A stretch of 64,000 nucleotides of DNA from Klebsormidium nitens (taxonomy: Eukaryota > Plantae > Klebsormidiophyceae): positions 62,001 to 126,000 of the forward strand of contig DF236962.1 of NCBI GenBank assembly GCA_000708835.1, in the 5' to 3' direction. The notes under the pieces were generated by a model. That model was not told the DNA's origin and did no database searches. It saw nothing but the letters and a program-made list of their open reading frames with translations. Numbering within the stretch: position 1 is the stretch's first letter; each line of letters begins with the position of its first letter. This document shows, one piece after another, positions 30,155 through 53,127 of this stretch. Both the position numbers and the translations under genes were made by a program.

Positions 30155-30465
30155 TATTTGGTGCAGGCAAACAACAATCTGAAGAAATGCAATCACGAAT
30201 TTCAGGACTTCAACAGGTGGTAAGTAAACAGCCTGAGGGCCAGGCTGAGCTGGCTTGGGCAGGGCGATCAGCCGCTGGTTGTATCCATACCAGATTCTGC
30301 CCGGGGTAAATCACTGAGGATTATCCTCAGGTGAGAAAAGCCCGGTAAACACTTCCCCGGCTGCATGAATGGAGCTGAAAATCCCGCCTAGTTGAACACC
30401 TCCCCAGAATAAGCAACATCCTACACTGACAGGCGCTTCTGCCAACTTTTGGCCAATTTGATAAA

Positions 30466-33400
30466 ATGGGAGGGGTTGAGAGCAGCCCTGGCGGGGCGGA
30501 AGACGGCCAAAGCGGGCACAAGGAGGTGGTGAGGAAACGTACTTGTTCTCACTTCTGCTGAAATCGACAAATGCTCGTGTTTCTCATGGGAAAGTGACAT
30601 CGACCTTGTTGCACCACCAATTAGAACAGAAATGCAATGCTTTTGAGTCAAACAGCTTTCAAGCACTGTTTGCTGGTGGCTGAATCAGCAGAACGGCTGC
30701 CCTGAAAGGGCCAGCGTGCTTGGTGTGCTGCTGCCAGATCTCAGAAGTGAGCGCTAATGTCAGATGCCATCTCAACATGAAAACTGCTATCCACGGACTA
30801 ACACCACTCAGGTATCCATACTGCAATTGTGCAACACTCCTCAGCGCCTGAGGTCCCTTAAAGTTCCTCTTTGGTTGCTCGCAGGAACGTGGAGAGGGGC
30901 TTACGAAGCACCCGCCCAGTCCGGATAAACCAAAGGTCCAGTTGACCCATGAGAAGCCCAGCGTTGAGGACTCGGTGGCTGCAAAAATAGTTGAGCAGGG
31001 GGAAGAAATCCTCATTCAGGTGACTCTCGTCTTCTGCACGCCTTTTTCATCGAGAACCGCGTTACAGCGAAGCCAACAGTCATGCCACCTACCTCTGTAA
31101 CAAGAGAGCCTTTGTCCGGTTGCTGTGCCTCGTTTTTCCACCGGCGTCCATCAATACCAGCGCGATTATTGTGATTCCGTACAACGCCCATGGCGCCCAA
31201 TTTGCTTCCCTTATGTATCCTCCCTTGAAGATGATGACACCTCTCTGCATTTTCAGTTGTGTATTTCCTGCTTTTGACTTGGTGCAGGGTTTCAACTGGG
31301 AGTCCCACCACCGTAACTGGTACCAGACGCTGCTCGAGAAGGTGCCAGAGCTGAAGGCTGCCGGCTTCACTGGCATCTGGTTGCCTCCAGCCTCAGACAG
31401 CCTTGCACCGCAGGGTGAGTTTCTGTGGCCAATTTGGGTCGACAACTCTTACACTATAGGATGTGACAACTTGTCGTCTTCCTCCTTTTTAAATTCTTTC
31501 CTTGATCTATGTTATTGTTGCTTGGAAAGAACTGGCGGGAAACGTTGAGGGTTCTCAGAAGTTACTCATGATCAGAGCCTATGATACTCTGCAGGGAGCT
31601 TGGTAGTCAAAAACTCTTGCGAAATTCGTTGCCTCCGGCAGTTTCACCCTGCCGCTACGCCAGTGATACATCCACGACTCAATCTCCGGAATTTGATTGG
31701 ACTTTTAAGTAGAAAGGAAGACTTTTGGCAGCGTTTCTCATTGAATTCTTGCAGGCTACCTTCCAAAAGACTTGTACTGCCTCAATTCCGCCTACGGCTC
31801 CTCCGACCAATTGCGCCACCTTCTCCGCACCCTGAAAGCTGCCGGCATACGGCCAATAGCAGATATTGTTATCAACCACCGGATTGGTTCCGCCCAGGGG
31901 AACGGAGGGCAATGGAACCGGTACGAAGGCATGAGGATGGCTTGGGACGAGACCGCAGTCACCTCGGACAGCTACGGGGGGCTGGTGAGCTTCTGCAGCC
32001 TTTTTGGTGCCAGTTTTGTTCGCCGATCACACCCTCTTTGCAGTCGTGGATCCACGAAGAACTTGTTCACATCTGTTGCAGCATGGGAGGGGAAAAGTAT
32101 GACGAGAAAAACTCCTCTTTCACACTTCGACAAAAGCGGGCATGCAATGTACAGGCTACGAAGCGCCTCCTCTGATCGCTCTTCTTCTGTCATACCACAT
32201 ATTTTTTGGACAGAGCCTTTGAAGTATCTTCGCTGCAGGTCTCGTGAAAGGCAAGCCATAATTGTTCTTTGCGAAGATTCCAAGCAGCTGATACAATTTA
32301 GCTCAACCGGGTTCGTCTTAGCAGAACATCCGTTTGTGCAGGGTAACCCCGGGACGGGAGAGACTTTCGAGGGCGCCCCGAACATCGACCACAGTCAGGA
32401 GCACGTGCAGCAGGACATCACTGAGTGGCTGCGCTGGCTCAAGGACGACGTCGGCTTCTCGGGGTTCCGCTTCGACTATGCCAAAGGGTACGTCCAAGGG
32501 AATGCTCTGGCTGTTGCGCGAAGGTGTCCTGTTTGTTTTTATTCAAAGCGAAGTCAAACAAGTCGGTTTGATGTCGAACCTTTTGCTGGTCTGTTTGAGG
32601 AACGCTCCACTGACGAAGCGACAGGAGCCGGATCAAGGCGACTCGCTGGGTGATATTGGGCCCTATTTCATAGCTCTGCGTCACGGTCTTCCGGTAAAAA
32701 CTGTGTCCACGACACACATCCTTTTCAACGCGGTGTGACTCTGACGAGCCCTCTCGCTTTCAGCTCTGAATGACGACTTCGTAGAGTTTTCTACTTCACT
32801 TTTCCTTCTACACAATCCGACGTCATCGAGACTTCGTTCTTCAAAGCCAGCTCTTTTGAAAAGCAGGAAAGTCACCTAAGCCATAAGCAGCTCGCTAATT
32901 ATAGCTGCTCTAGGCGACAGAAAATCATATCTTCAGGCAGCAGGTTCTGTCTTATTCCCCGTTCACTTGACTGCAACACCGTGTTCTTATTCTGACCGCT
33001 CCTTTGCACCCCTGGCAGGTACAGCCCCGACTTCGTGAAGAAGTATATCGAGGCGGTGCAAACCGACTTCGCCGTTGGCGATTACCGGGATGCTTTCGGC
33101 TATCTTAGGTGAATGCAACACCGTGTCCTGATGTCGACCGCTCTTTTACACCTCTGGTGCAGGTACAGTCCCGATTTCGTGAAGAAGTACATCGAGGCCG
33201 TGCGCCCCGATTTCGCCGTGGGCGAGTACTGGGATGCCTGTAGCTACGGCCCCGAGCCGGAGAGCGTGCTGGAGGCCAACCAAGAGGAGCACCGGCAAAG
33301 GATAGTCGACTGGATAGACGGAACAGGAGGACTGGCTTCCGCGTTCGATTTCACGACCAAGGGGGTGCTGCAGGTGAGTCCTCTTCGGCTCTTGTTCTGG

Positions 33401-35343
33401 TAACATGCTGGGAGCAAACACGTAGAATTTCCGTTGTCCGCTGCTTGATGTCGAGGACTCTGGCCCGGCCGGAAGGAAGCATGTTGACCACAACCGTTGC
33501 AAAAGTCGTAGTCACAGCCGAGTCTGGTCCCCAGGTTAACCAAGCTGTCAGTAATCCAGCCTCCAAGAGAACGGGAGAACCTACATCGCTTGCTCTGCTT
33601 CAAGATCAGACCTTGCCAGCATGGAAGATTCGATTTGACACCTTTTGCGTTTCATGCAATGAGATCATTAAAGCCGTATTTCACTAGACGTCTTGGCATT
33701 GAAGAACCGACGCAGAAGGTCTTCGGCTGTGAACCAGAACGTCGCTCGACGATCCGTTGCAGGGGGTTGCCAAGCGACGACCGAACAAGCCTTAGACGCA
33801 AACAATTGCACAGACAGTACCGTTGCTGCTTCACTGGAAGGACCGCGGCCTATCTGGCACGCAGCTGCGGGTCAAACCACGACTGCTGATACGGACTGTT
33901 CATCGCTACATTGCAGAAATTGAGCACGTTTTCCCACGGTCCTTATCAAACTTTCCGTCCATAAACAGTCGCGTCCTAACCCGTGCATCTGAGATTCCTT
34001 TGCTGCAGGAAGCGGTCAGCAAATCTGAGTACTGGCGGCTGAAAGACGACCAAGGCCGGCCGCCTGGCGTCATTGGGCTGTGGCCCGCGAGAGCAGTGTC
34101 GTTCGTCGAGAACCATGACACGGGCTCCACGCAGGTGAGGTCCCGTCCGCCACAGCTTTGACTTGAGTACACCGCTCACGTCACAAGGTGCTTGCGCTCA
34201 AGAAGGTGCTTACCACAAATTGTATCTAGAACGAGTACGGCTGTTCGATGAAGAACAGAACCGCAATCCTGTAAGGGAAGAGTGATCTGATATTGTTTAA
34301 GGCGAGGGAACGTCAGAGTTCCGATGTTGTCCTGTTCTTGCACCGGGATCGCTTGCAGGTTATTTTATTCAGCTCGAATCCGTTCTGATTGATTATCGTG
34401 TTTCCAGAACCACTGGCCATTTCCCAAGGACGAAGTGTTGCAAGGGTACGCGTACATTCTCACGCACCCGGGAGTGCCCACGGTCTTCTACGACCACTAT
34501 TTCGAATGGGGGGGCGAGATGAAAGCTGCGCTTTCGCGTTTGGTGAGGCATCCCACATCCTTGCTTTTACGTCAGAAGTTTTGTCTGCATGGGTTTTGGA
34601 CTTGACAGGAGGGTTGGTGACTTTCTATGTTGAGTAACTGTGGGCCTGCTGAGACGAAGGCTGATACAGGCAGCATCCAGGGCCCTCAAAAAAGTCTGCT
34701 ACTAAGTCTGCTTTGATTAGCCTCCTGTCAAGACAGGGAAGGTCATGAAACTCAGTTAAGACTTGAGCGCCGTCTAAACACTGAAAGGCCACGGACAACG
34801 ATCTACGTCAATTGTTCGTGCGCACGATTTTGAGGATGGATGATTTCATCGACGACGCAGCTTGTCACAGTGCTTGGGAAGCGTTGCGGGTGTCTGGTCG
34901 TTGGAAGTTTCGATTCTTTGCCTCGACTTTGAGTGGAAGTTGAGAGACATTGTTTGAAAGACATGTCTGTTTAGCTTGATGACCAGTAATTGTTCAACAT
35001 ATCTGTCCGCAGCACTTTTCACTGCAATTGTCAACACTACGATTAAGGAAATTAGCTTCGGAACTTGAGCTTCTGCTTTTTGGATGCAGCTTTTCGGGTT
35101 GAAGTCTCACCGAGATTCTGTCTCTTTGCGTTGCAGATACAAATACGACGACAGCAGCACATCACAAGTCAAAGCACGGTTCATATTCTAGAAGCGGCAT
35201 CTGTTTATGTTGCCGAAGTAGATGACTGTACATTGATGAAGCTTGGAAAAGAGGATTGGGCACCTCCAGATAATCAGAAATGGTGTTGGGTACACTCAGG
35301 AAGAAACTACTCAATCTGGACGAGAGAGAAAAAGCCGCCCTGA
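30466..35343 (+). CDS. AMY2: Alpha-amylase, GH13 plant AMY2-type
   Basis: Exons (30466-30528), 30764-30811, 30885-31019, 31288-31414, 31755-31984, 32342-32487, 33163-33373, 34009-34134, 34408-34542, 35137-35343. Motifs [48 protein letters not shown]. First exon is tentative. Confidence 0.93.
33019..33108 (+). other. Duplicated 90-nt partial exon of AMY2 (potential in-frame cassette exon)
   Basis: [29 protein letters not shown] versus [24 protein letters not shown] at 33163. Flanked by gcag| and |gtgaat; phase 2 at both ends. Confidence 0.75.
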
Positions 35344-36155
35344 TCTGTCACCCAATGCTAAGGCCTCTACTTCTGCTCGTGGTGTTTGGGTTTCTCCTGC
35401 GCAATGCTGTTGAGCTTCTGAGTCTTTATAGCTCATCTTAGGTTCGCGTTCGATAAGATTCTGGTTGACTTGGATCTGCTAATGATGCACACTAGCGGCC
35501 ACCTTCGCGATAGGAGTGGCCGCTTGTCTCCACATGGGGATGTGATGTTGTGGGATTCGAGACGTGCAACTCATTGAGCATGCAACGTGCGTTAAAAAGC
35601 ATGCCAATACATGATGTCATGACGATCAATATGGTTCTTTTCACAATGATGAATTCTGCGCGAACGTGATGGATGTGCCGTTGGCCATAGTTCCAGAGTA
35701 ACATTACGGCTGTCCCTTCACATGCTGATGAAAGAATGTCGAAACCACATTGCAAAGACGTGTTGTGCATAGTTCTGACGGTACTGCTTTTATGCTTTTG
35801 CTGACGACGGGCCCTGGCCCCGCATGCCAGCATGCTCCCCGAGTCCTATTCTGAGGGAGTTCCCTCGTCTGTAGCCGTCCGATAAGATTGTCTTTATCGG
35901 ACGTTGCATCTTGTACAGCGGGTCACCATCAAGAAAACTTTTGAGGAATCGTACGGTTCCTTTTCTCCAGCTGTCCATCAACGGCATCACTACACCACCT
36001 GGCTCTAGCTAAGAGCTGCACAGTGCGGCGGCGCAAACCAAGTAGAGCAGCAGATCATGGTGGTTGCATTTCGTGCTGTTTAATTAGGCGCATTTCGTAT
36101 AGCCCTAGGGGTCCACAAGCTTCCTTTTTTGAACATCTGAACGTGTTCAGGCCCA

Positions 36156-38544
36156 ATGGTGCCATTTGACCTTCACATTGGGGGCCACTCTATCCCGGGG
36201 CAGCAGCTTCTGCCTGGTGTGGACCCAAGCACCCTCACAACTGGCAGCTTGAAGGCATTGCTGGGGCTGAAGCTTCACGTCCCTCCCAGGAATATTGTGC
36301 TCAAGCTGGGGGGGTGGCGGCCCCTTTCCGCAGACGAGTCTGTCCAGGGACTTTATCACCTAGCAGCGGAGACAATTGATCCCGAAACTCGCCTCTTTGA
36401 CCCACCTAAGGTCGTCTTCAATGTGGACACAGGACGCCTCTACTATCGTCAGGGCGAGGGAGCTGCGAAAGTGGAGCTGAACGATGAAGAGGGTCTGGGG
36501 GCCAACTTTGTGCTGGACAAGCTGGTGTTTCACCTGAATGTGAGTGGCGAACAGCATTTGGAGTGTAGGGAAGAGAATCTCAAACAGAACCTCTGAAGTA
36601 GTTTGCCTGAAGAAGACTGCTTTGAGGGTTATAGAGCAAGCAGACGGATTGTACTTACCTTCGCTTGTTAAGACCATGCGTGCGGGCATTGGCTCTATCT
36701 CCTTTGAATGTCCCACTGAGTCTTGGGGGTTCATGATACACAACGGGATCAGAACAAAGTGTTCATGATGCATCAGGAGTTTGGAACCGATCAATGACGC
36801 TAGATTCTCAACTTCGCTAAGCGTCGGAGAACTTTGGGCCTAGGCCAACATTAGTGAGGGCTGGTGGCCATATGGAACGCTGTTCAAGCGTAGGGGATTG
36901 AGTAGGCTTGCTCTGGGGCTGTCCTTGACCCTCTCTTATCTAAGAAGTTTGGCAGGATTTTAGGCGGTTTTCTATGGATTGAAGACATGGCAGTCAGCCA
37001 ACGAGAAGATGCCTCCTATGTATCAAGAGACTGTACAGCGTCGTCATCTTGTATTTCAAGGTCATAAAGTACAAGATTATTATCCTGAAATTGTGACATC
37101 AAAGCTGTTACAATAACAAGGTTCGTTCCTTATTCTCCATTCCGAGATCCTTTCAGCAGTTAATGGAAACCAACCCATGGCTCAGTCTTCTGGTGCCACT
37201 AACGCAGATAATTGAACCGTCAGACTCGCTGTACCCGCACTAGATCCCCACTCACATTCCCCTGGATAAGCCGATCCATTCTGCTCCCTCATAACCGTCA
37301 CCCCGCACCTGTTGCAGGTCAAAGTGCGACCTCTTCCAGAGGAGATTCTACCAGGTGGAGGAACCATCATCGCACTTCTCCTGGGCCTCAACAACGCCGT
37401 TGCGCGCCAGTTCACCTTGATCACGATCACCAAAAGCACCACGATTGGGGACCTGACGTCATACATCTCTCAAGAAGTGGGGGTCTCCCCGAGCGACCTG
37501 CTCCTGCAAACTGGCAACGTCCTCCTCGACAAGCAGAACGCAAGCGACACCTGCTCGCAGGCGGGAGTTCAGGCGGGGTCTGTGATCATTGTCCGATGCC
37601 GCGAGTGGGGGCACATAGTGCTGTACTGCAAGACACTCACCGGCAAAACGCTGATTCTGAGATGCTCCGGTGAAGACACGGTCAGCGAGGTGAAGAAGAA
37701 GATCTACGATCTGGATGGTTATCTCCCAGACCAGCAGCGGCTGATCTTTGGCGGGAAGCAGTTGGAGGATGAGCGGACCCTTCAGGAGTACGGCATCCAG
37801 GACGAGGACACGATCCATGTGGTGCTGCGGCTGCGGGGGGGCATGCTGCACTGCTCGAGTGAGTCTGATTGAACGTTGAGGTCTTTTCAGATTGTAACTT
37901 GTGCTGATAATCTTTTGTAGCAGAAGTTGTAAGAAAGGTGTACCTTCAGGCAACATTTTGTGGTGTCTGGGTGGCCATCTTTCAGGCGACGCGTGTCGTT
38001 TGTTGGAGGTCTACAGACCTTGTCTCAAACTCGGCTGGTATCTGTTCCGATCCTTCCGGACAATCTGGTGACATCGAAGTGTCAAGATAGGGGGATTCAA
38101 CTAATCAAGCAAGTCGGACAGAGCCGGAGTTCGCCGTCAAGTTACCACGCCACTTCACTAAAGGAGCGTCAAGGGGCCAGTAGACGACCCCACTTTTGAT
38201 CAGCGTCAGCTTGCTGCTAAGAAGGCCATTGTGCAGAAATCACTGACAATTGACGCGCAAGTGATTTTGGCTTGGCTCTCTGCGCAGGTGGCCGGATCGA
38301 TCTTCAATCTCTGTGTAACATGACAACGGAACTGGAGGTTGGGATGGTATCCGGCGGAATCTGCATCGGTCATCGGAATGTCCGAGTGGACAGAGCAACG
38401 GAAGCTGGTCAAGTGAGCGCGGCACTGGCGGAGCTTCACAACGAGACACAGAGAAAGGTGCGTGACCTGGAGGCGATGAAACGGGAGATCGAGCAAGCGA
38501 TCGCAACTCTGAAGCAGAATGTTTACCGTGAAGGATCTGCTTGA
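36156..38544 (+). CDS. Multi-UBL/ubiquitin fusion protein, copy 1 (LRLRGG, K48 retained), ~393 aa
   Basis: Exons 36156-36539, 37318-37858, 38288-38544 (phases 0, 1). Ub domain CKTLTGKT...[19 protein letters not shown]...VLRLRGG followed by MLHCSSGRIDL. Confidence 0.85.
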
Positions 38545-39544
38545 GATTTGTACATAGTATCCGTCGTCAGGCGAGCCTTCCGTCATCCAGCCATGCGCTC
38601 TTGTACAGCTAAGCGGGGTCCTGACGTGGTGCACAGTTTGAGACAGTTGTAATAATGTCTTCGACTTTTGGTTAGTGGTAGGTGGTTGTCGAGAGTTCAT
38701 AATGTCCTCTACATGCGCTCTCCATTATATGATCTAACCATTGAGGCTGAAGACGTCTAGCCAAATGTACAACTTTTTTCTGATGTGTATATAGGGCGAC
38801 ATTAACCATCCATACGAGTAGACGTGGGTGAACCTCAAGGCAAATTCTTCTTGTCACATACCCTTACTCTTGCTTCAGTCATTGCAGAAAGTAATGCCGA
38901 AGTTATACATCCAGCTGGTCGCCTCTTGCACATGATACACTGGCTAAAGACGAATCATTCTTGAGGCTGCTTATCGCATATGTGCATGGTGCATGCGGGT
39001 ACTAGATCATGAATGCATCATTGTAAGATATCCTTAACTTGAATGGCGGTTTCGCTAGCTAGCAACTAGTCCGTCGGATGGTGAATTGGGCAAATGCTTG
39101 CTGTTGTTCCAACGCGAGACGCGACTTGGTACTGCTGCATCAACGAGCTTGCACGCTTTTGGATCGTCGGTGCACGCGATATGATTGCAACGGACACAAA
39201 TAAGGTCATGTTATCGAGCGATCGATTTGAGATCATCTGCTCACGCTGCAGCTGACGATTGGCTGCACTAAAGTTCTCACTTGGTACGCCTTAGTTTAAA
39301 AAAGACAGTCTGTTTAAAGACGGAATAAACTTAGTTGTGATACAACTAATATATACGCATCAGCAGCTTCGACGGCCCTGCACTATACTCGTCATGATCT
39401 GGACGACTCTTGCTATATTATTTTCAGTCCTTCAAAGGCCTTTACATATATACAAGCCAAGTTCTTGCCAGCCTGACCTGCAGGCTCTGTACCAGACACG
39501 CGCCTTTCAAAGTTGGCCGATCAGATCCAGCCACGGCGTCCGCT

Positions 39545-42450
39545 TCAAAACATCAACTGCCTGGCAAAGAGCTTCCGTTTCTTTGCCGCCCACTCTCGCA
39601 ATTTTCTCTCGTTTTCTCCTTCGTAAAGAACGGCTAAGGCCTCGCTCAGTCGACGGGCATCCATGGTTCCGTCGACTCGAACAGTTCGCTTGCCGATGCA
39701 GTCTCCTCGCTGCACCATCTTGACCTCGAGCTGCCAGAGAGTCGGCGCTCGCAGATGCTCGTAATCGATCTTGCCACCTGAGGATTGACGTGACAAGCAG
39801 ATCTCGTGATGGTTTTCGGAAATTTGCTTCCCCATTTCATCCACGGATCACATTCCAATTGGGTACGGTGATGTCTGTTCTCCTCAATCTGACTTGGACT
39901 TCCTGAAAAATGATGTGTGTTCTGGCTTTGGAGTCTCCTGCGGTCAGAGCAGGTCAGACTCCTTAGACAGTCGGACATCTGTCGGGACGCCATCTCATGG
40001 TCGAGACAGGATCGTCCAACCGGGTCAAGAAACTGATAAATTTCGATCACTTGCAGAAGGATCATCAACAGACCAAGGAAGAGGAACAATAGCTCCGAAA
40101 GGTTTATCGTGCTCAGCAACCAATCAACATGCGTCTTCGTAGGACCTTCTTTTCCAAGCTTCAAGATCTGACGTCAATACCATCCCCTCGATTTGAATCA
40201 AGACAGGGTCATGCTTCCAACCACAACGGTAGGATTCGGTACCGTTCCCGATCTGAGACGGCTGAGACGGCTATTGACCATGCCTTGCAAAAAGCTTTCT
40301 CCTCGACAATTGAGGAGAATCTAACCAGACGGAAAGGTTTCTGCGAGTATTTCGCTTCCTGAAGAAAAGTTTCAAAATCATTCTGAACTCGACTGCCAAC
40401 TTTCTTTCTCACGAGGCTTCATTTTCTCCAAAAGAGGCTCTTTTGAACTCTTTGAGCCAGGTGCAACAGAGTGACGGTCATCAAAAAACGCTCACTCGAG
40501 CAGTGCAGCATGGCCCCCCGCAGCCGCAGCACCAGGTGGAGCGTGTCTTTGTCCTGAATGCCAACATCCGCCAGGGTGCGCTCATCGTCCAACTGCCTCC
40601 CACCAAAGATGAGCCGCTGCTGGTCAGGGGGGATCCCCTCCACATTCTGGATCATTTCCTTGAGCTCTTCAATGGTCATACTACCCCTGCAAGGTTTCAA
40701 CTCTATTGTCTTCCCCAGCATTGTCTTGCAGAAGAGAACCATCTCCGCTTCATCCCCCTTCCCAACGACCCTCCTGACAGTCAGAAAGGACAGGGACTGA
40801 ATCCCGGCCTGCCAGCAGAACTTGCTCTGGGTTTCGCCGTCCCTTAATCTTCTGCCGTTTGCCAATTGCACTAACTGCTCGCCTGGGGGGATCCCCGACT
40901 CTTTGAAAATCAATGACCTGAAGGCCTCGACTGTCGTGCTTCTGTTGATCGTGGTCAGGCTGATGTGGCGCGTGATGGCATCATTGGGGCCCATGACAAG
41001 GACCACAACTGTCCCTCCTGTCCCGGCCCATGGTGAATACCGCGAGGGGAGGGGTGCAGTGCTCACCTGCGAAGGCAAAGAAAGAACCTGAGCGTTTGAT
41101 AACCGGCGTTTGAATTTTGGGGATACAAAGGTGACTCCTTGCAGAAGTTGCTGTTTGACCCAATGGAACTCAAGATGAGATGCTGCCAAAAGTTTCGAAG
41201 AGAGTCCTATTAGGGACACCTGTGTTAAAAGACATGTTAAATGCTTCTGGGAGACTACGGCTTATCAGTGCACTGTGAGGACACTTCGGAGCAATCACCC
41301 TTGAATAGGACCTGATGTCATTTCTCCAATGTTTCTGTATACATGCAACTGGTTACCGTTGACAAGAAAGGTCCTAGTGCCCATTGCTCAAATAAAGCTC
41401 GTGTTGCAGTCACAAGCGGGTCTGCTGGCTTTGAAGATCCCTCACACTGAGCTCCTGTTGTTCCGTTTGCCATTTGAATGTCAGAAATAGTTGGCAATTC
41501 CTGCGAGCAGCAGCTGTCTTCACGTTTGGACCTTAGGAAGCAGATACTCTCACTGAAAATAATTTGCCAGGGAATCCAGGAGGATGACAAAAGCTCCGAG
41601 CGTCCGGTGCTCCCAACTTCTCCCAGATCCAAAGCAGCAGAAGACAAAAAAGTATCAGCTTGAATTCTACAACAAATCTGTTCAGTCATACTGATACAGT
41701 AATTGGCAACACACATTTAAGGGAACCCGCTGGCCACCATCAGGTGAACCCGCTGAAGTCGACTGTATTGGCACGACACCGTACTTTCATTGCTGCACGT
41801 ATCTAATTACCTGCATTTTGTGGGACTGTGGCCATGCCCAGGACAGTGGGCTTGACTTTTGAAGGGGCAGTCCCCTTGATGTAACAAGTTGCATTCAGAG
41901 AGAGCCACAACGTAACTCAATCAAAGGCGCGTTTGAAGGGGCTATGAGTATCCTTCACAGGAGCTACAGCACACCTACAGCAGGACCCTGATCAACTCTT
42001 GCTTCTCTTTGTAGACTTGAGGCTCACCTTCATATGTAGCTCCAGCTTATCCAGCGCGCATAACTCAGCAAGCCCTTCCTCATCTTTCAGCTCCATGCAG
42101 TCTGCCGCACCTTGCGCCTGCTGATGAAATACACGCTTCATGTCCACATCAAATATGAGCTCCACAAGACGGACGTTAGAGGAATAGTAGTCTGCTCGGC
42201 TTGCTATGTTGTCCTCGCCTTCCCATGCAAATTGCTCAGAATAATGCGGGAAGACATCCTGAATGCACTCATGGTCTGAGAGCGGCCGCCAGCCCCCCAG
42301 CAGGAGCTTCATATCCCTAGAGGAAATGCACAGTTTCACCCCTAGCAATGCTTTCAGAGACCCCGCGGTGAAGAACTTGAGGTCCACACCGGGCAGGACC
42401 TGTTGGCCGAGGATGCATCGGCCCCCAATGCGCAGCTCAAACGCCACCAT
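39545..42450 (-). CDS. Multi-UBL/ubiquitin fusion protein, copy 2 (LRLRGA, K48R, frameshifted tail), ~408 aa
   Basis: Exons 42450-42028, 41066-40496, 39777-39545. GGC>GCC at 40512-40514; the homologous tail [18 protein letters not shown] lies in another frame, ending at 39507. Confidence 0.78.
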
Positions 42451-43719
42451 ATTGTAATACAGTCTACAGGCTTGAATATGGCGGTTTGACAACCACCATA
42501 CTTAATAACACGACTATGCCAAGAAACTATGCCGTTTGGACTGCAGCTAGCTGCAATCTGGGCTGCAAAACCAAGCGCCAAGCAGGCGCCAAGCATTTGG
42601 CCTGTATAATCTGTTATCGGCGTGGGTAACATTGGTTGCGCTGCGGATGATCCCTGGATGATCCCTCAGAGTCACCCACTGTTGCATGTTTGTCCTTGAC
42701 CGTACGATTGACTGGACACAATTTTCGAGTAAGTAATCGACGGCTTGGATCCACCAATGGTGGTGGAGGATCCGCAATCCCGTGAACTCGGCGTGAGCCG
42801 CGGCTTTCTCACATGAGCAATCCCGCAGCTAGGATGTCCAGCTGACAGTGAGAGGGAGAGAGGGAGACTCGTACGTCCACTCGTTGGTTAGCAACGATGA
42901 GCTAGGAGATGAGATCAGATCGCCAGCTAGGCTTCGCAAACAGACCGAGTTAGTCTGCGGCCCATCTGGCGGCTGAAGATCGATGCTGCACAAAGAACGA
43001 CGCACCATCACCGCGCATTACGTCCATGCCCAGCTTATATAATAGCTCAAGTATTAACACAACAAATAACTTGTGGGAGCGGATAAGCGGTTCAAGTTGA
43101 AAATCTGCATACTCTGCATGCGAGAGTCCACTCATGATCAACTCAGAATATGGCCCAATGGTGCGTGGCGGGATGATGGAGTGATGGGGGGATGATTATA
43201 TTTCAAGATTGAGTACGTTGTGGAGTTGCAAGTCATTGGCAGTGCGGAGATAACTTGGATCATCATGCCTTGATATCTCGTGCACGTGGCACGCACTCGG
43301 TTTCGCGAGCGACTTGACAGAAAGCTGCTTGATGAGACGTGACTCGGCTTGCTCAGCAAGCTCGTCTTTCCTGTTTTATGGGCGAATCACAACCCGGCCA
43401 ATCTCGCCGCTTGAAAGCAGTTTGATGCATCCAAGGCCATGGCTGGAGGGCACAGCTACGACAATCCTATTCCATTTTCGGTACGTTATGCCAGTAGTGG
43501 GCCCATGTTAGTCAAACAAGACAATGATGATCTATTCAGTTGAAACAAATGACCCAATTAAAATGTATCAGATGCTCTAATGGCCAGGCTGCAGCTAGCA
43601 ATTTGGACACATTCTTTAATCATACCGTGATCATACCTCCTTGACGACCTTTTCAAATATACAACCAAATCATGCCTGACGTGCGCTGTAGAAGAAAACG
43701 TAGACTAATTTGGAACAAC

Positions 43720-46648
43720 TCAGATCCTAGTCACAACATCCAAGTGCGCTTTCTGCTTCAGCGCTGCGATTGCTTGCTCCAGCTCCCGTTTCTTTGCCTC
43801 CAATTCCCGTATGTTCTCCTCTTCGGTGTGAAGCCCGGATAGGGCCTCGCTCAGTCGGCCCGCATCCGTGGTTCCATCTATTTGAACAGACCGCTTGCCG
43901 ATGCAGACCCCTCGCTGAACCATCTTGACCTCGAGCTGGCTCGTTAGCGCCCGGAGCTGCTCGAGATCAATCCTGCCACCTGAGTAAAACGGTGCGAAGA
44001 TCAGGCCTTTGGAAGGCATAGAGCTTCTAGTTGCACACTGCAAAATACTTGATTTGATTACGGTCCGATCCGTCAAAGTATTTTCTGTCCTTATTGATCG
44101 ACCTTACTCCCTGAAAAAGTTTTGCTTGAAAAGCTTTGCTTAATCTCGCTTGAAGACTGACCCGGTGGTATACACGCTTTGCAGCCGCATACGTATATTT
44201 GTCAAAATGGCGTTATGTACTTGAAAGTACGAGGGACTGTTGAACGGCCGCTCCGGGAAGGATTCACACTCGCCAGGACTCGGATGACAAACAGCAAAAG
44301 TGGGAGGTACATGATGCTCGCATAAGTGCTCCTGAACCTTGAATGAGCAAGAAACCTTGACCCGTAGTAGCTCCAGGCCTCACGTCAGTTTCCCTTCCTA
44401 CATCTAGGAAGAAAAATGGAGAAGTTTGTGTCCGATTCCATGTCCGACATCGGACGGCAGTCAAGGATCCGAGCAATGAATTCTGTCTATGACGAATATT
44501 CGGCTGAGGGACTTAGATTGTCTATAACGAATGTCCTTTCAAGCTTGTTCTGGTAAACGTTGTGCGCAAGAAAGATCACAATTGTGAACGCTTCCTCGAC
44601 TCTGCAATTCTCGATTGACAAGCCTTACTTGACACGTGGTACATGCCTCCTCGCAAGCGCAAGACCAGATGCAGGGTGCTCTCGTCTTGAATGTTGTAGT
44701 CCGCCAGGGTGCGCCCATCCTCCAGCTGCTTTCCCGCAAAGATGAGCCGCTGTTGATCCGGAGGAATGCCCTCCATATCCTGTACAGCTGCCTTGAGCTC
44801 GTCAATGGTCATGCTACTCCGGCAGTGCCTCAAGTATATTGTCTTCCCCGTCAGCGTCTTGCAGAAAAGAAGCATCGTCTCTTCCTTCCCCTTCCCCACG
44901 AACCTTCTGACTATGAGAAAGGACCGCGACTGGATCCCCGCCTGCCAGCAGTACTTGCTCCGGGGGTCATTATCCACTAATCTGCTGCCGTCTGCAAAAT
45001 GCAGTAATTGCTCGTCCAAGGGTATCCCCGTCCTTTGGAAAATCATTGACTTCAGGGCCTCGACCGTCGTGCTTTTGTTGATCGTGCTTAGGCTGACGTG
45101 GTGGGTGATGGCATCGTTGGCGCCCATGACAAGGACCACCACCGTCCCTCCTGTCCCTGCCCATGGCAGGTACCGCGAGGGGAGGGGCGCAACGGTCACC
45201 TGCAACAGCAAGAGTAGAACTTTGCAGGTATGGTCACTTTGGTGGCTGGCCAGGTTTCTGCTGATCTACTTGAAGGACATTCTGCAGCCAACTGTATAGG
45301 ACCACTTTGACAGAATTGCGAGATAGAGATGCTGCAATGTATTTAGAAGGACCGTTAGTATTGAAGACATCTGTAAGGGAACATCTGAACATCTAAAACA
45401 TCTGAACACACCACTTATTCTGGACAAGGTCTGCAGTCACATCCGGAAACCTTCGTCAGACCAGAAGCCATTGTGTCACTTGGTCCAAGGGTACCACATT
45501 TCTGATAACTTGAAAGAGTGGTTGCAGTAGACACTGATTGCAGATTGACAATAAAAGACCTATCTGTTCACTGCTCAAAGAACAGGCGTCACATGGCATT
45601 CACGAGCACTCAAGCTGGCTTTCTAAAGATTCTCCATGTTCGGCTTCTATTGTCCTACTTGCAACAACTCAGTCATCAAAATAACTTGACTGGTCCTTAA
45701 GTCACCCTTAAGTCACTGCACCATGCTTCCCTTTAAGAACATGGTAAGCCAAATTATTGAAAGAAAGAACCTGCCATTAGACTGCAGGAGGGTAGTAAAA
45801 GCTCCGATTGTCAGCTGTTGTTCCCCTTTGTCCTCGACATTGAGCAGTAGAAAAATGGTTTTTCACCATGCGGGTTTCGTAATCCCAATTCTCTCGCAAA
45901 ATGTCCAATCACACTCTCACAATTCGTGGAATCGCAAGAGCACAGGGCTTTGGCAGGCCAACATTGCATCAACCAGCTGAGATTGCCAGCTGCAGATTGG
46001 CCTGTCACCTCTAGTATGGTCCTCATTGCTCGCAAGCTCCATGGTCAGATCTGCTGACGACTGGTCTTGAATCTTAGGGCACCCCCCCTCAAGATATGAC
46101 CGATTCGGAATAATGCAATGGGTCTTCTGGCAAAAAGGCAATTAAAGGGGCCACTTTCAGGGATTAAAGCAGGATACAATCAAACCCCAAGCAATGTTCC
46201 TTCTTTTGGAGGACCTGAGTCTCACCTTTATATGTAGCTCCAGCTCATTCAGCGCACAAAACCCGGCAAGCCCCTCCTCATCTTTCAGCTCCATCTCTGC
46301 CGTACCTTTGTCCTGCTCATAGAACAGGCGCCCGGTGTCCACATCAAAGATGACCTCCGCGGAGCGCAAAAGGTTGGAAGTATACTGTGCTGCTGAATTT
46401 TCTGCACTATCCTCGCCTCCCCATCTGGACTGCTCATAGTACTGCAAATAGAGATCCTGGACACGCTCATCGTCTAAAAGTGGCCGCCAGCCCCCCAGCA
46501 AGAGCCTCATGGTTCTGAAAGAGATGCACAGCTTCTGTCCCAGCAACGCTTTGAAAGCTCCGGCAGTAAGGATGCTGGGGTCCACACCAGGCAGGACCTG
46601 TTGCCCGGGGAGGCATTTGCCCCCCGTGTACAGCTCAAAGGCCACCAT
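43720..46648 (-). CDS. Multi-UBL/ubiquitin fusion protein, copy 3 (LRLRGG, K48 retained), ~417 aa
   Basis: Exons 46648-46226, 45199-44629, 43979-43720. Ub residues 34-76 differ from plant ubiquitin only by K63D; then [14 protein letters not shown]. Confidence 0.88.
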
Positions 46649-47040
46649 GCTGCACGGATTTGCTAAGCTGGCTTTGTTACTCCATCTGTTTCCTGGCCAA
46701 GCAATGGCCCCCTTGTTATGCTCTTCTTGCACCTGGAGTTCAAACTGCAGAACTGCTGAGCAGGAGCCGAGCAGCAGGAGCTGCCCTGCGTAGCAGCATG
46801 ACGTGTCTACAACGGCAACAGGGGAATTGCGTGATCCCTCAAAATCTCAATTCTTGCCCTTTCAAAAGAAACGTCCGATCGTTCGATACGTCATCGACGG
46901 CCCAGTCTGCGCCCCAAGAGCTGAGCAATTTGAACGTCCGATTGAAAACATCGGGATTGGACGGCTAGCACCAGTGGGTTTAGATTCAGAGCACAACGAA
47001 ACCAGACCGCTTCATGATCCTTCAACTTCAAGCCTGCCAG

Positions 47041-47124
47041 GGCCGTCGAGCCAACGGGCGGCGCAACATTTCATTGAAGCCAGCTGGCCATGAATTGCAA
47101 GGCCGGCGAGCAAACGGGCGGCGC
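47041..47124. repeat. Two copies of a 24-bp GC-rich motif at 60-bp spacing, upstream of UBL copy 3
   Basis: ggccgtcgagccaacgggcggcgc (47041) and ggccggcgagcaaacgggcggcgc (47101), 22/24 identical. Confidence 0.7.
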
Positions 47125-47914
47125 CGCTTCCCGCTCTTGCAAGGCCAAATGAAGCTTTCAAGGCGCTCTTCCTGCAAGATCAGCCCCGCTCCGCAATTCC
47201 TGGGGCAGTCGATCCGACAGTTGAATTTCTTCGACTTGGCTCCAGGAGGCTCGCCATACACACTGTCAGACGTTGTAACCACGATGAAACCGTTGCATCC
47301 GATACGTCACAAAGAAGGCACTGGCGTATCGGCCGTACATATTGTTACAGTTTGAGACAGTAACGCCGGTCAGCGATTCTCCGATCTAGTGCCAGAAGTC
47401 ACGCACACAGTCATACTCATGGAGCGATCATCCGACCGATCCGACCAAGAACTAGATGGCTTCAATCACACTTCAATACTATTTCTTTCCATGGCCATTT
47501 TAGTGTACCATTGTATTTGCCTGCGAGAACATTCAGCTGCGAGGGAGGCATAATTAAGTACTCTCAAATGAAACTACTTTTTTACAAACCCGCCAGGTTT
47601 ATTGAGTCTCGTTTCACGCTCATCAGCCCAGGATCCAATTCGTCCATGAAGGCAAAGTGCTGAATCCAGGAGATCAGTAACGCCCCGATGGATCCGCAAT
47701 TTCAAACATTTCTAGACGAAAAGCAGCGAGACTTGTTCTTTCTGGCGACCGACTTGCGCTTCTTTAGGATCTGCTCATCTATACACTGGCACAAATCTGC
47801 TGCAAGCGTTGAAGTAGGACTACTCGATCCTCACTACTGCTTCTCTGCGTATGTTCGCGTGCCCGTTCTGCTTCAGCGCCTCAATCGCCCGTTCCAGCAC
47901 CCGTTTCTTCGCTT

Positions 47915-50835
47915 CTAACTCCCGCACTTTCTCCTCAGTCTCTTGTGAAGCTGCCTGGCCAAGGCCTTGCTCAATCGACGGGCATCCGTGGTTCCATCGA
48001 TCCGTACAGTCCGCTTGCCGATGCAGACTCCTCTTTGAAACATCTTGACCTCAAGCTGGGTCGTCAGCGCTCGCAGTTGCTCGAGATCGATTCTGCCACC
48101 TGTTAACACCAGCGTGATGATCAGACCTTCTGAGAACCTGAAAGCATTGAAATGCACTCGCATCCTCGTGACCGAGTCAATCACGATCGAAATCGTCAAG
48201 ACTTCGTTGTTTCTTTGATCGACTCCCTGAACGAAATCCGGATATTCACGAATCTGACTCGCGGATAACTTAGACACGATACTTACCGAGCTTTTTAGAC
48301 ACCGCACACATTTGCCTGCCAAAACTACGCTTTGCATCAAGAAGCACGTCCGCAGGTGAGGGACTGGTGCTCACCACTTTCGAAGGAACTTCAATACGCC
48401 GATGTTAGAACCAGATTATTGGACTGAGGGTGTGTCGAAAAGCAGTCACTACAGAACTTTGGCAAGACTTGAACCGCAAGGCAGGCTTGGGAAGATTGAG
48501 GCTGGCTACCTTCAAATCAGGTTCCTACATCTGAAGGGAAAACTGAGTACGCTGCCTAGAAAACACATTCGTCGTGTCACTGTTTCCGACGTTAGAAGGC
48601 TGAATTGCACCAGAATTGATTCCGAGGACTACTAGACTATTTGACCCGAGATAAGAGAGACTCTTGACGGAAAGATTCTGCATCGCGCGAACGCTTTTGG
48701 TTCGAATCAACACTAATGAAGCCACAAGAGCTAAACTGAGCGACTCTTTAATCAATGTCGCTTCTAGCTAAGACTGTTTCCAACGGAGATAAAATCTATA
48801 CCGGTGAATGCATGTTCTGACTTGCATGACAGGGCACTCGAGGGACGCCGCTCACTTGAGACGTGGTACATTCCCGCTCGCAGGCGCAGGACCAGATGCA
48901 CGGTGCTCTCGTTTTGGATGTTGTACTCCGCCAAAGTGCGCCCATCCTCCAGCTGCTGCCCCCCCCAGATCAGCCGCTGCTGGTCCGGGGGGATAGTCGT
49001 TTTCTCCTGGATTGCCTTCTTGAGCTCGTCGACGGTCAGGCAATGCTTCAACGTTATCGTCTTCCCCGTCAATGTCTTGCAGAAAATTTGGCCCATTTCC
49101 CCTTCCTTTCCCATCCCGACGCACCTGTCCACTGTGAGAAAGGACTGTGACTGGATCCCCGCCTGCCAGCAGTACGTGTTCCGGGGGTCCCCATCCACTT
49201 TGACTCTACTGCCGTCAGCAAAGAGCAGTAACTGCTCGTCCAAGGGAATACCCGTCTTGTGGAAAATCATCGACTTGAGATCCGCGACTGTCGTGCTTCT
49301 GTTGATCGTGGTTAGGCTGACGTGGCGCGTGATGGCATCCTTGGCGCCTCTGACAAGGACAACCACTGTTCCATTTGTCCCTGCCCATGCGAGAAACCAC
49401 GGAGGGAGGGGCGCGGAGGTCACCTGCAACAGGAAGAGTATAAGCAATTGAAGTTGCTTCCTTGGTTGGCTGGCCAGACAAATTGCGGATTCAAAAAGGT
49501 GACTTTCTGCAGCAATTCACTCTCTGCAAACCTTGACTGAATTGCGACGTAGAGATGCCGCAAATCACGAAGACGAGGTCGCTTCTCGATGATAGCTGTA
49601 AAAGTCATGTAAATGTAAACCACTCATGTCTGGTGCAGTCTAGTCTATTTCTGGAACACCACTGCTTAGAAAGGGAAACCAAGGCAAAACGTCAGATTAT
49701 TGGATGTTCCTGATGTATGCAAGACTGTGAGATTGGTCACATTTTGAACTGTTTGCAGAACAAGAAAAGCCCTCTTTGCACTACATGAGTACTTGCAAAA
49801 GCTTTACACGTGAGTCAGGAGCCCTCTGCTGGTTTCCAAAAGATCCCTCACTTCATGCTTCCACTATTCTACTTGCAACACCTCCTTTCTAGGATTATTG
49901 CATACTAAACCTCAGATGAGATTTGCCGACAATATTGGGCCCTACGAAGAAGATACTTTCATTGATATTGGGTTGCCAGGACAGGCTATCTGAGCGGATT
50001 GCAACAGCCCCTAGCATTCGCTGTCATCCCCGTTGACCTTGATTTTGAGCAGCAAAAGGACTAGTCTTTTCATGTCATGCTGTCAGCATAAATGCGACAC
50101 GTGACCCTGAGCAAGCTTACTCATGTATTGCATGAGTACATGTGATGGCAATGCAGAATTTGACAGGGAACCAGCAGGTCGCTATGTCATCCAGCTAAGG
50201 TTGCCAGATTGGCCTGACTCAGTGCTGCCAGTCACCGCTGCAGAGTCTGCATTGCTTGCATGCTCACAACGTAGGTCTGCTGACCGCTGGTTTTAAACGT
50301 GAGGGCAGCCCCCTTTATGTGACTAACTTTGTACAAGCCACAGCGTAATCTGGTGAAGGTCGGGAGCTAAAGCAGCTTACAAGCAGGTTCTTTTGGCACA
50401 CCTGAGTCTTACCTTCGAATGCAGCTCCAGCGTATCCAGAAAACAAACTGCAGCAAGCTCCTCCTCATCTTTCAGCTCCATTTCTGCCGCTTGCGCCTGC
50501 TGATGAAACAAACGGCACCTGTCCACATCAAAGACAACCTCTGCGGAGCGGGAGAGGAAGAGATCATACTTTATTGCTGACTTCCCTGAGTTAGTCTCAC
50601 ATCCCGGCGTGGTTTGGTCACAAGAGTACTCCACATAGAAATCCTGAACGCGCTCGTGGTCTGACAGCAACCGCCAGCCCCCCAGCAGAAGCTTCATGTC
50701 TTTGGAGGAGATGCAGAGCTTCCTCCCTATCAAAGCTTTCAGAGCCCCTGCGGTGAGGTCCTCGGGGTCGACATCAGGCAGGATCTGTTGCCTGGGGAGG
50801 CATCTTTTCCCATTGCGCAGCTCCAAAGCCACCAT
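47915..50835 (-). CDS. Multi-UBL/ubiquitin fusion protein, copy 4 (LRLRAG, K48Q, frameshifted tail)
   Basis: Exons 50835-50413, 49423-48856, 48099-47915. Ala codon at 48875-48877; 1-nt loss near 47944 leaves [25 protein letters not shown]... in another frame, ending at 47820. Confidence 0.78.
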
Positions 50836-51099: not shown

Positions 51100-53127
51100 C
51101 GATCTACCGCTGCTTGACCGTCCGATCGAATAGCTTGACGGCTGGCACTACTCTTAGAGCCTTAGTACCCACCTCTACCCAGCGCGTACGGTCGGCTGCG
51201 CGGCCGCTGCGCAGAGGAACTGTCATGTGTCGGACTCTGGAGACGGTAAGGCCTATCTGCTCAAAGCAGATTTGCGTTTCACGACAGCAATCTGACAACG
51301 AATTGCTAGGCCGATTGTTTCCCTCGCGGAAGGCAAGGAGGCTGCTCTGCCATGGAGCGCCGCTTTCCGCCACCTTAGCCTGAGTAACTTATATTATTTT
51401 GCTGACATTGCACGCACTTGAGAGTGAAACATGCCCCCCCGCAGGCGCATCCCCGTGCGGTTCGTGTTCTCGTCCTGAACGTTGGAAAGAGCTAGTGCCT
51501 GCCCGTTCTCCCGGTTCTTTCGCCGAAGCCAAGCTGCTGCTTGTCCAAAGACTGGACTTCCAAGCCTAAGATCATCGCCTCGATCTCCTGGACCCTATCC
51601 GTACTGGCAGTACATTGCTTCTCTGGGCCCCTAGACTCCCCCATGACCGGTCGAAAGACCCCTACTCAAGCTTCTCCTGCAGGCTGGCCGCCCCTACTTC
51701 ACTCTGCCACTAGTTGGCCCCGTACTAATAACCAACCAAGTTATCATCGGGGTACTGCAGGAGCAATGTCGACGTCCGTTAGAGGATCCCCGTTTCATTG
51801 AAGGTCTGTTAAAATAGGGCTCCACCTGGTGACAGACGTCGATCGCGAGGTAGCTTCTTCTGTGACGTCACGATTGGAACCCAACAGTAATGCTACGACC
51901 GTCCCTTCGGCTTCGGCCTAGGTTGGTAGCAAACTCTCCGACGGCAGGCGCCACGTGTCGACCTGCAGACGTCGAGTTCCTTGTCGGTTTACTTCAGCTT
52001 GACAAAGAAGACGATTGAATCAGCGCTAGCAAGGTCAAAGCAATGCCAAGATATTGAAGCAGCAGCCCCATTAAGACGGTACCTGGATACCAAACAACGC
52101 CGGCACAGGTTGTGCGGCTTGTAGAGCCCTCTGCTGTTGACTGGCTCTTGGTCATCTGGAGGGGAAGAATTAGATAGCGAAGACGTAGAAGGGAAGAGTA
52201 AGAAGCTTTTGCTTTTGAAGGGGCCCTTTTTGAAGCAGACTGGAAGAAGAGCAAAGACTACTCGAGAGATCGAACCCAGTCGATGCATATGCCCGAACAA
52301 CGAAAAGCTCGTGAAAGAGAAGAAAACAAAGAAGAAAGGAAGAAGGAAAGAAACTCCTCACCACAAAGTGAGGGGGGAAAAGGGATTCAGATCCACAACT
52401 TGATGACTTGACTTCGTCAAAACGGCAGTTCTTCTCGGGTTGACTCTTGAGATTTGGAGAGCCGATCGCGATGAGCGCCGATATTTCGAGTACCATACAG
52501 CTTCTTGCGCGTCAATCAGATTACCCCGGCTTCTACTTTGGACCAAGAAGATACCATCTACAACCATCATAGGCGAGCTGTTCAATTGTTTGATGACGCG
52601 AGCGCAAGCAATCTGAAAGCATCACGTCTTGCGAGCGCATTGCCATGACCTCAGGCCCTCGACAAAGAAGAGGCAATGCGCGAAGGAGAGGCCGTCGCAA
52701 TAAGGCTACAATTCCGAAGGGGCGCTTGGAACCGCCAAAACGCGCATGCTGCTCGTTTCTCACCGGCAAACTGGTACAAAAAAGGACCTCCAAGGCTTTC
52801 GTGCCCCTCTTGCCCTTTGTGTCACAGCTCACAACAACGTCTTTAGTCCACGTCGTACTGCACGATTCTCACCGTGGGAAAGGCTGGCCTTACACGGTTA
52901 TGATCTTTCCCAGATACTTGGCATAGGAATCTTGAACGCCTTTGCTCGGAGAAAGGGTGGCATCCGTCCCTCTCTAGATCATAGCTCGGGAGGAAGGTGG
53001 AGCTTCCAAATCAAAGACTTCAGCAGGTCCCTTGCCGGAGGGGGCGGGGGTCCACCCCGGGCAGCCCCTGCTGCCCGCGGCCATAGATCCAGTTGCCGAT
53101 ATTGATGCACAGTTCAAACGGCAGAAG
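51100..53127 (-). pseudogene. Fifth, disrupted copy of the multi-UBL/ubiquitin fusion gene
   Basis: Exon-1 relic (LPFELCI...GQQGLPGVDP; LLKSLIWKLHLPP; VQDSY; VQYDVD). Exon-2 relic 51962-51418 (VDTWRLPSESLLP*..GTVVALLLGSN; DRVQEIEAMILGLEVQSLDKQQLGFGE; ENGQALALSNVQDENT..MRLRG/MFHS|gt) with stops and frameshifts. Weak exon-3 relic below 51375. Confidence 0.75.

Follow-up and report, generated by a model that had tools for sequence, protein, structure and literature searches.

Loss of the ubiquitin di-glycine in two probably relaxed paralogues of a triple ubiquitin-like gene array in Klebsormidium nitens

The window analyzed here is a 64,000-nucleotide stretch of contig DF236962.1 from the streptophyte alga Klebsormidium nitens (assembly GCA_000708835.1). 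Between positions 36156 and 50835 it holds four paralogous three-exon genes for proteins with tandem ubiquitin-like (UBL) modules, numbered copies 1 to 4 (Table 1). Copy 1 lies on the forward strand and the other three on the reverse strand; copies 1 and 2 are arranged tail to tail, in convergent orientation, and copies 2, 3, and 4 follow one another in tandem. Copies 2 and 4 have each lost the terminal di-glycine of the ubiquitin domain and carry a frameshift in the tail behind it. The comparison with relatives and the selection measures described below suggest that both are real paralogues under relaxed constraint in a birth-and-death tandem array, and that their products are probably uncleavable.

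Gene models and domain layout

The models of copies 2, 3, and 4 agree residue for residue with the NCBI K. nitens proteins P0001, P0003, and P0004, which are placed on a scaffold of 440,711 bp. For copy 1, word-based searches turned up no annotated K. nitens protein, despite its intact appearance and a conserved orthologue; this copy may be unannotated, or differently modeled, in the public record. All eight introns start with GT and end with AG, and their phases are 0 and 1 in all four copies. A full-length transcript from K. subtile (P0002, EukProt) has its exon junctions exactly where the window models place them, which validates the three-exon splicing. The first-pass annotation had described the splice sites and the ~400-codon frames as preserved, and both features are borne out. 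Exon identity between copies ranges from 60 to 85%, while the introns are not alignable.

Exon 1 (128–141 codons) belongs to no Pfam family and gives only weak beta-grasp look-alikes. Exon 2 (180–190 codons) encodes a divergent UBL followed by a true ubiquitin domain, and in each of the four copies it matches the ubiquitin family PF00240 with 99–110 bits against a cut-off of 25.4 (E-values from 1e-28 to 3e-32). The exons were searched individually, and the full-length protein queries were the database records P0001–P0004 and P0155.

The tail, about 85 residues long and encoded by exon 3, is predicted to form a beta-hairpin and then a long helix. A five-sequence alignment gave a poor AlphaFold2 model of P0003 (mean predicted local distance difference test score 49.7), of which only the secondary-structure outline was used. 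The helix gives weak matches to GCN4/HY5-type zippers in a search of PDB sequences. No tail belongs to a Pfam family, the sole match being a sub-threshold one to DUF4226 for copy 1, and none has the identity of a ribosomal L40 or S27a extension. Searches of the ESM Atlas produced nothing usable for the tail; leads for the N-terminal part were limited to weak beta-grasp resemblances. The middle of the tail, for example 43860-43920 in copy 3, resembles the pentatricopeptide-repeat consensus, probably by chance. A match between the tail and a designer pentatricopeptide-repeat protein in the PDB (E-value 1e-8) was rejected as a repeat-summed artefact in which no single stretch passes.

In word-based searches the family matched only Klebsormidium-type sequences, and a tail profile found no matches in JGI metagenome contigs. 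A library-wide HMMER search with an exon-2 profile is uninformative on the spread of the family, all 150 of the matches listed being multi-repeat ubiquitins. A full-text literature search found no paper on a triple-UBL family of this kind. The tandem-UBL system appears to be undescribed, and has so far been found only in Klebsormidium.

Table 1. Coordinates of the triple ubiquitin-like genes and of the features discussed in the text (window positions; reverse-strand exons and codons of copies 2 to 4 and of the decayed copy are given in reading direction where listed high to low).
Feature	Positions	Strand	Details
Copy 1, intact	36156-38544	+	Exon 1 36156-36539; exon 2 37318-37858; exon 3 38288-38544
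Copy 1, sites		+	K48 codon 37756-37758; di-glycine codons 37837-37842
Copy 2 (NCBI P0001, 408 aa)	39545-42450	-	Exon 1 42450-42028; exon 2 41066-40496; exon 3 39777-39545
Copy 2, K48R codon	40596-40598	-	AGG
Copy 2, Gly75-Ala76 (G76A)	40512-40517	-	GGG GCC; inside the tract converted from copy 1
Conversion tract, copy 1 to copy 2	40490-40565	-	C-terminal third of ubiquitin, MLHCS, splice donor; copy 1 counterpart 37790-37865
Copy 2, tail frameshift	39560-39574	-	TTTGC (5 nt) against one codon in the other copies; new stop 39547-39545
Copy 3 (NCBI P0003, 417 aa), intact	43720-46648	-	Exon 1 46648-46226; exon 2 45199-44629; exon 3 43979-43720
Copy 3, sites		-	K48 codon 44731-44729; di-glycine codons 44650-44645
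Copy 4 (NCBI P0004, KFL_000130185, 391 aa)	47915-50835	-	Exon 1 50835-50413; exon 2 49423-48856; exon 3 48099-47915
Copy 4, K48Q codon	48956-48958	-	CAG; TTG (Leu) in the orthologue L4
Copy 4, Ala75-Gly76 (G75A)	48872-48877	-	GCG GGA
Copy 4, tail frameshift	47942-47943	-	Premature stop 47917-47915; aligned to L004 (ENA) and L4 (SRR), both AAC GAG ACT in frame
Copy 4, stretch after the frameshift	47820-47941	-	Ancestral frame open and conserved to the ancestral stop 47822-47820
Decayed fifth copy, upstream of copy 4	51299-53118	-	Remnants with stop codons, 35-50% identity (tblastn and translation)
Fifth copy, remnants		-	Exon 1 53076-52924 (stops); middle UBL 51905-51774; ubiquitin end 51519-51397 (...MRLRGGMFH)

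Residue changes, relatives, and tail frameshifts

Around K48, around position 63, and at the end of the ubiquitin domain, copy 1 reads FGGKQL, IQDED, and LRLRGG, and copy 3 reads FAGKQL, IQDES, and LRLRGG. The corresponding motifs are FGGRQL, IQDKD, and LRLRGA in copy 2 (K48R and G76A) and IWGGQQL, IQNES, and LRLRAG in copy 4 (K48Q and G75A). Position 63 is thus D, D, D, and N in copies 1 to 4, and K63 is gone from all four. Each glycine change is a single G-to-C substitution in a run of G, from GGC to GCC in copy 2 and from GGG to GCG in copy 4. The K48 and terminal motifs of the four copies, the loss of K63, and the two tail frameshifts had all been reported in the first-pass annotation and are confirmed at codon level.

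The substitutions G75A and G76A block conjugation of ubiquitin and hinder its cleavage by deubiquitinases, and K48R blocks the formation of K48 chains. Ubiquitin with G75A/G76A has been used as a non-conjugatable control (PMC3003321), and both changes are also present in an engineered ubiquitin scaffold (PMC3961674).

Several relatives bear on the ancestral state. L001, a genomic contig of a related alga (Logan SRR23617307), is syntenic with window positions 30463-38558 and contains an orthologue of copy 1, Lc1, with K48, D63, the di-glycine, and an intact tail; against copy 1, its synonymous divergence (dS) is 0.41 and its ratio of nonsynonymous to synonymous substitution rates (dN/dS, or omega) is 0.21. 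About 1 kilobase downstream of Lc1 and convergent with it, as copy 2 is with copy 1, lies a gene that we call X, with AGKQL, IQKEST, LRLRGG, and an intact tail. A second contig, L002, overlaps the end of L001 and carries the rest of X together with a complete orthologue of copy 4, L4, which stands head to head with X and groups with copy 4 at 100% bootstrap. L4 reads LIYAGLQLE (K48L), D63, and LRLRGG, and its tail is intact. Exon 2 of X is split over the two Logan contigs, which overlap by 30 nucleotides, and was merged in a script for alignment. The order of the array in the relative, with L4 head to head with X and X convergent with Lc1, differs from the tandem order of copies 2 to 4 in K. 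nitens.

Two further contigs cover only the tail. The tail on L003 (Logan SRR20627847) is similar to that of P0155, and L004 (ENA ERZ23789742) is collinear with copy 4, at 81% over 566 nucleotides that include non-coding DNA; L004 shares the insertions specific to copy 4 and reads its tail in one frame. P0155 itself is a fifth intact K. nitens paralogue of 409 residues, located on another scaffold (400,242 bp); it has Q48, R63, and LRLGGG, and its tail is intact. The tail is likewise intact in the K. subtile transcript P0002, which has K48, K63, and LRLRGG. By inspection of the alignment, K29 is absent in copies 2, 3, and 4, X, and L4. Position 45 also varies in the copy 4 group, being W in copy 4 and Y in L4. 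Copy 4 pairs F45W with G75A, and the engineered ubiquitin scaffold mentioned above, a binding protein, has both of these changes plus G76A (PMC3961674); we take this match as a coincidence, but it suggests that the fold tolerates F45W together with G75A.

The terminal di-glycine is absent in copies 2 (GA) and 4 (AG) and present in copies 1 and 3, Lc1, X, L4, P0002, and P0155. Every relative has an intact tail, and the di-glycine wherever that position is known, so that the glycine changes and the frameshifts are derived, independent, and recent. The di-glycine, K48, and an intact tail are thus the ancestral state, from which G76A, G75A, and both frameshifts departed in the K. nitens lineage. 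The earlier suggestion of two independent hits on the di-glycine therefore holds: they fall on separate branches, and the relatives keep the motif.

Copies 3 and 4 are the closest pair among the window copies and copy 1 is the outgroup, so that the pattern of "alternate copies" seen by the first-pass annotation has no meaning on the tree. When restricted to the four window copies, the fit favors the tree ((copy 1, copy 2),(copy 3, copy 4)). Pairwise dS between the lineages of copy 2, copy 3/X, and copy 4 is 0.55–0.69, slightly above the value for the species split (0.41–0.48). We considered X as a clear orthologue of copy 2 and rejected this assignment, since it follows from position alone: dS is 0.58 between X and copy 2 and 0.57 between X and copy 3, and the tree is nearly a polytomy.

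A gene conversion tract from copy 1 covers the last ~22 codons of exon 2 in copy 2, where eight of eight informative sites are of the copy 1 type, compared with about 8% elsewhere. The final 45 nucleotides are those of K. nitens copy 1 except for one base, that of G76A. The tract is closer to K. nitens copy 1 than to the copy 1 orthologue of the relative, which places the conversion after the species split. D63 and the MLHCS junction of copy 2 therefore come from copy 1, and G76A arose after this recent event.

The three kinds of lesion had been proposed to co-vary, and this stands for two of them. Among nine scored members of the family, the two genes that have lost the di-glycine are also the two with a tail frameshift, an overlap that has a probability of 1/36, or 0.028, by chance. 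Loss of K48 does not follow them: it is found in four of the nine, two of which keep the di-glycine (p ~0.17). Because K48 is also lost in L4 (K48L) and P0155 (K48Q), both with intact di-glycine and tail, the lesions do not form one set. Loss of K48 is older than loss of the glycine and separate from it; whether it happened once or twice in copy 4 and L4 is ambiguous (CAG versus TTG).

The two frameshifts both lie in the last exon, and elsewhere copies 2 and 4 have neither stop codons nor lost splice sites. Such frameshifts should truncate the protein, and nonsense-mediated decay would not be expected. They remove the last 19 ancestral codons in copy 2 and the last 38 in copy 4. In copy 4, one nucleotide, the C of an AAC codon, has been lost between 47943 and 47942: orthologues have CAC AAC GAG ACT where copy 4 has CACAAGAGACT. 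This deletion cuts off a helix that was formerly under purifying selection. Programmed frameshifting or a micro-intron was considered as a rescue of copy 4 and rejected, as no slippery heptamer occurs at CACAAGA and, in the orthologues, the exon runs through this point without interruption. In copy 2, the ancestral frame past the shift is open to the ancestral stop position (39509-39507), and it has degenerated, with 11 of 19 residues different from X in our own count. The two events differ in age. That of copy 2 is the older and occurred in a tail already free of constraint, while that of copy 4 is very young, with conservation still evident in the frame beyond it.

A conserved frame behind a one-nucleotide deletion is also what an assembly error would leave, in which case copy 4 would be intact apart from G75A and K48Q. 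The reference is a Newbler assembly of 454 and Illumina data (PMC4052687), the frame of copy 4 continues to the ancestral stop with an omega of 0.21, and the close relative reads straight through the site. However, what is missing is a single C flanked by AA and G, where no homopolymer length had to be called, and we judge a 454 homopolymer error unlikely here; the public annotation also took the truncated model of copy 4. For copy 2, the strong divergence of the downstream frame and a tail omega of 0.64 fit a real and older shift. We therefore consider an assembly origin of the frameshifts, mainly that of copy 4, improbable.

Selection and decay in copies 2 and 4

Selection was measured with a Goldman–Yang codon model with branch-specific omega, fitted by maximum likelihood with our own script on exons that were aligned separately and whose columns were pooled. 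The main set comprises seven sequences (copies 1 to 4, Lc1, X, and L4) and 384 codons. In this set, the terminal branches have an omega of 0.52 for copy 4, 0.22 for L4, 0.48 for copy 2, 0.21 for copy 3, 0.26 for X, and 0.13 for copy 1; a fit to the four window copies gives 0.46 for copy 2, 0.42 for copy 4, 0.20 for copy 3, and 0.23 for copy 1. Over the fits that include the relatives, the branch values are 0.46–0.54 for copy 2 and 0.52–0.54 for copy 4. With copies 2 and 4 as foreground, omega is 0.52 against a background of 0.24 (p = 2e-4), and a foreground value of 1 is rejected as well (p = 0.002). Removal of the conversion tract, or placement of copy 2 as sister to X, leaves the foreground at 0.51–0.57 (p = 3e-5 to 6e-5), and the rejection of omega = 1 stands (p = 0.009 to 8e-5). 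Neutrality is rejected for each of the two copies singly (p = 0.007–0.034) and for both jointly (p = 0.002–0.009).

The relaxation is about two-fold and differs by domain, affecting the N-terminal domain in copy 4 and the tail in copy 2. Exon 1 of copy 4 has an omega of 1.4, which differs from the background (p = 0.0035) and not from 1. Its exon 2 has 0.35, compared with 0.31 in L4, so that constraint on this core matches that in the intact orthologue, and its tail, with the ancestral frame read across the deletion, has 0.21 (omega = 1 rejected, p = 0.039). In copy 2, the tail has an omega of 0.64 (p = 0.003 against the background, not different from 1), exon 2 has 0.33, and exon 1 has 0.49. 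Residues that are otherwise invariant among the eight other members of the family are changed at 19 of 106 positions (18%) in copy 2, 4 of 91 in copy 4, and 5 of 92 in copy 3. The only such residue altered in exon 2 of copy 4 is that of G75A. At these observed loss rates, the chance that one of the two glycines is struck is ~0.33 for copy 2 and ~0.09 for copy 4, which gives ~0.03 jointly.

The first-pass annotation had named a dN/dS near 1 as the mark of simple decay. The branches of copies 2 and 4 are not at this neutral value, and the pairwise ratio between the two is 0.42–0.43. Both copies also read through ~380 codons without a stop, where 5.5–7.8 stops are expected if the whole terminal branch was neutral; in simulations of this case, the probability of finding none is 0.0004 for copy 2 and 0.004 for copy 4. 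Since the split from L4, copy 4 has gained about seven in-frame indels against one frameshift in our alignment count, and every indel ahead of the tail is in frame.

These measures bear on the view that copies 2 and 4 are long-dead pseudogenes in simple decay. The tail frameshifts, the lost functional residues, and the doubled omega of both copies are compatible with it, as are the 18% of family-invariant residues altered in copy 2 and the presence of a dead copy in the same array. The rejection of omega = 1 on both terminal branches, the open frames, the intact splice sites, and a relaxation confined to particular domains rather than uniform all argue the other way, and we regard long-standing death of these genes as very improbable. 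The adjoining fifth copy, which carries stop codons and is truly dead, provides the contrast. The signal in copies 2 and 4 falls between the two readings first offered for them, decoy or early pseudogenization. The searched collections contained no K. nitens transcript contig of any of these genes, and the clusters of P0001, P0003, and P0004 each consist of one sequence and one contig.

Interpretation and relation to known systems

The intact members, namely copies 1 and 3 and the relatives, would consist of three beta-grasp modules, the last of them a true ubiquitin domain, followed after the di-glycine by a conserved tail (MxHxSSGR...) with a putative beta-hairpin and a leucine-zipper-like helix. 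The internal LRLRGG appears to have been retained across paralogues whose dS exceeds 1.7, and because of this long-term retention we infer processing after the di-glycine, and conjugation. Most simply, the retained motif would be a deubiquitinase processing site, where a cut would free a triple UBL ending in the di-glycine, plus the tail.

In copies 2 and 4, the single G-to-C changes would then be recent and independent events within the K. nitens lineage. Judging by established ubiquitin biochemistry, a GA or AG junction should be poorly cleaved and should yield a non-conjugatable UBL. Truncation of the tail may have come after the glycine loss or already before it, as an older event in copy 2 and as a very young deletion in copy 4, and loss of K48 would be an older and separate step. 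Neither gene behaves as a long-dead pseudogene. We give about an even chance to the view that they are partly redundant copies which have just lost competence for processing and conjugation, in early decay or reduction, rather than dedicated decoys.

Some observations weigh against this view. The joint chance of ~0.03 for the glycine hits, and a G75A that is the sole invariant change in exon 2 of copy 4, do not fit random decay easily and favor selected variants. A late neutral phase sized to the excess omega leaves, in simulation, a probability of no stop of 0.05 for copy 2 and 0.10 for copy 4, and is thus weakly disfavored. That the intact members are cut at LRLRGG is itself deduced from conservation, and the Newbler 454/Illumina reference leaves room for an error at the copy 4 deletion, although the base is not in a homopolymer.

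The first of these points leads to the alternative that copies 2 and 4 are selected as uncleavable ubiquitin-fusion proteins which resist degradation and act non-covalently, by occupying deubiquitinases, receptors, or partners of their intact neighbors. Lack of the di-glycine would keep them as one chain, and lack of K29 and K48 would let them evade the ubiquitin-fusion-degradation route. Uncleavable ubiquitin fusions are substrates of that route, and K29 and K48 are needed to degrade them (reviewed in PMC9703124); copies 2 and 4 lack both lysines. The constrained exon-2 core of copy 4, with omega = 1 rejected, the few invariant residues that it has changed, G75 among them, and the in-frame indels ahead of the tail agree with selection, as does the low probability of parallel glycine hits. 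However, GA and AG are seen only in K. nitens, while L4 and the gene at the position of copy 2, X, keep the di-glycine, and a G76A that postdates a recent conversion gives no sign of a long-term uncleavable state. Loss of K48 with an intact di-glycine, in L4 and P0155, is not a response to glycine loss. The overall omega is doubled, and the copy 4 frameshift removes a helix that selection had maintained. On balance we regard selected uncleavable variants as possible but unlikely. A more specific form, in which copies 2 and 4 would be natural, selected "UBB+1-like" competitors or regulators of the processing or conjugation of copies 1 and 3, with K48 loss as a permissive first step toward loss of the di-glycine, is speculative and in our estimate has a small chance of being correct.

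The reading of copies 2 and 4 as recently relaxed paralogues also places them beside young pseudogenes of tandem birth-and-death families, with which they share lineage-specific lesions, raised omega, conversion (in copy 2), and a decayed copy in the array. They differ from these in an omega significantly below 1, the absence of stops, intact splice sites, and a constrained core. Their G76A or G75A junctions resemble the uncuttable, unconjugatable ubiquitins of Ub-G76V reporters and UBB+1. In contrast to those, copies 2 and 4 are natural germ-line paralogues, in which the ubiquitin domain lacks K29 and K48 and is internal rather than N-terminal.

The layout of copies 1 and 3 is reminiscent of ISG15 and FAT10, which have several UBLs in one chain; as in ISG15 and ubiquitin, the last module ends in LRLRGG and is followed by extra residues that would have to be removed to expose the di-glycine. 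The Klebsormidium family, however, has three modules and a conserved zipper-like tail of ~85 residues, where ISG15 has only a few residues. The likeness is one of layout. Ubiquitin fusion genes, such as polyubiquitin and the L40 and S27a fusions, likewise place a ubiquitin domain with LRLRGG directly before another polypeptide, and the residue after the di-glycine is Met, as at the repeat junctions of polyubiquitin. Unlike in those genes, the extension is non-ribosomal and without a Pfam family, ubiquitin is the third module and not the first, and the ubiquitin has diverged, with K63 lost in the four window copies and K29 in copies 2, 3, and 4.

The Gly-Gly end and K48 of ubiquitin are among the most conserved residues known, and natural paralogues that have lost them while selection still acts on the rest of the domain offer rare test cases. 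In this array, ancestral states, the sequence of events, and selection strength can be read from the orthologues: K48 was lost first and independently, the glycine and tail breaks are recent and lineage-specific, and the relaxation of constraint differs between domains. The wider interest lies in the family itself, in which a streptophyte alga combines a triple UBL, a conserved LRLRGG inside the chain, and a tail that resembles a zipper.

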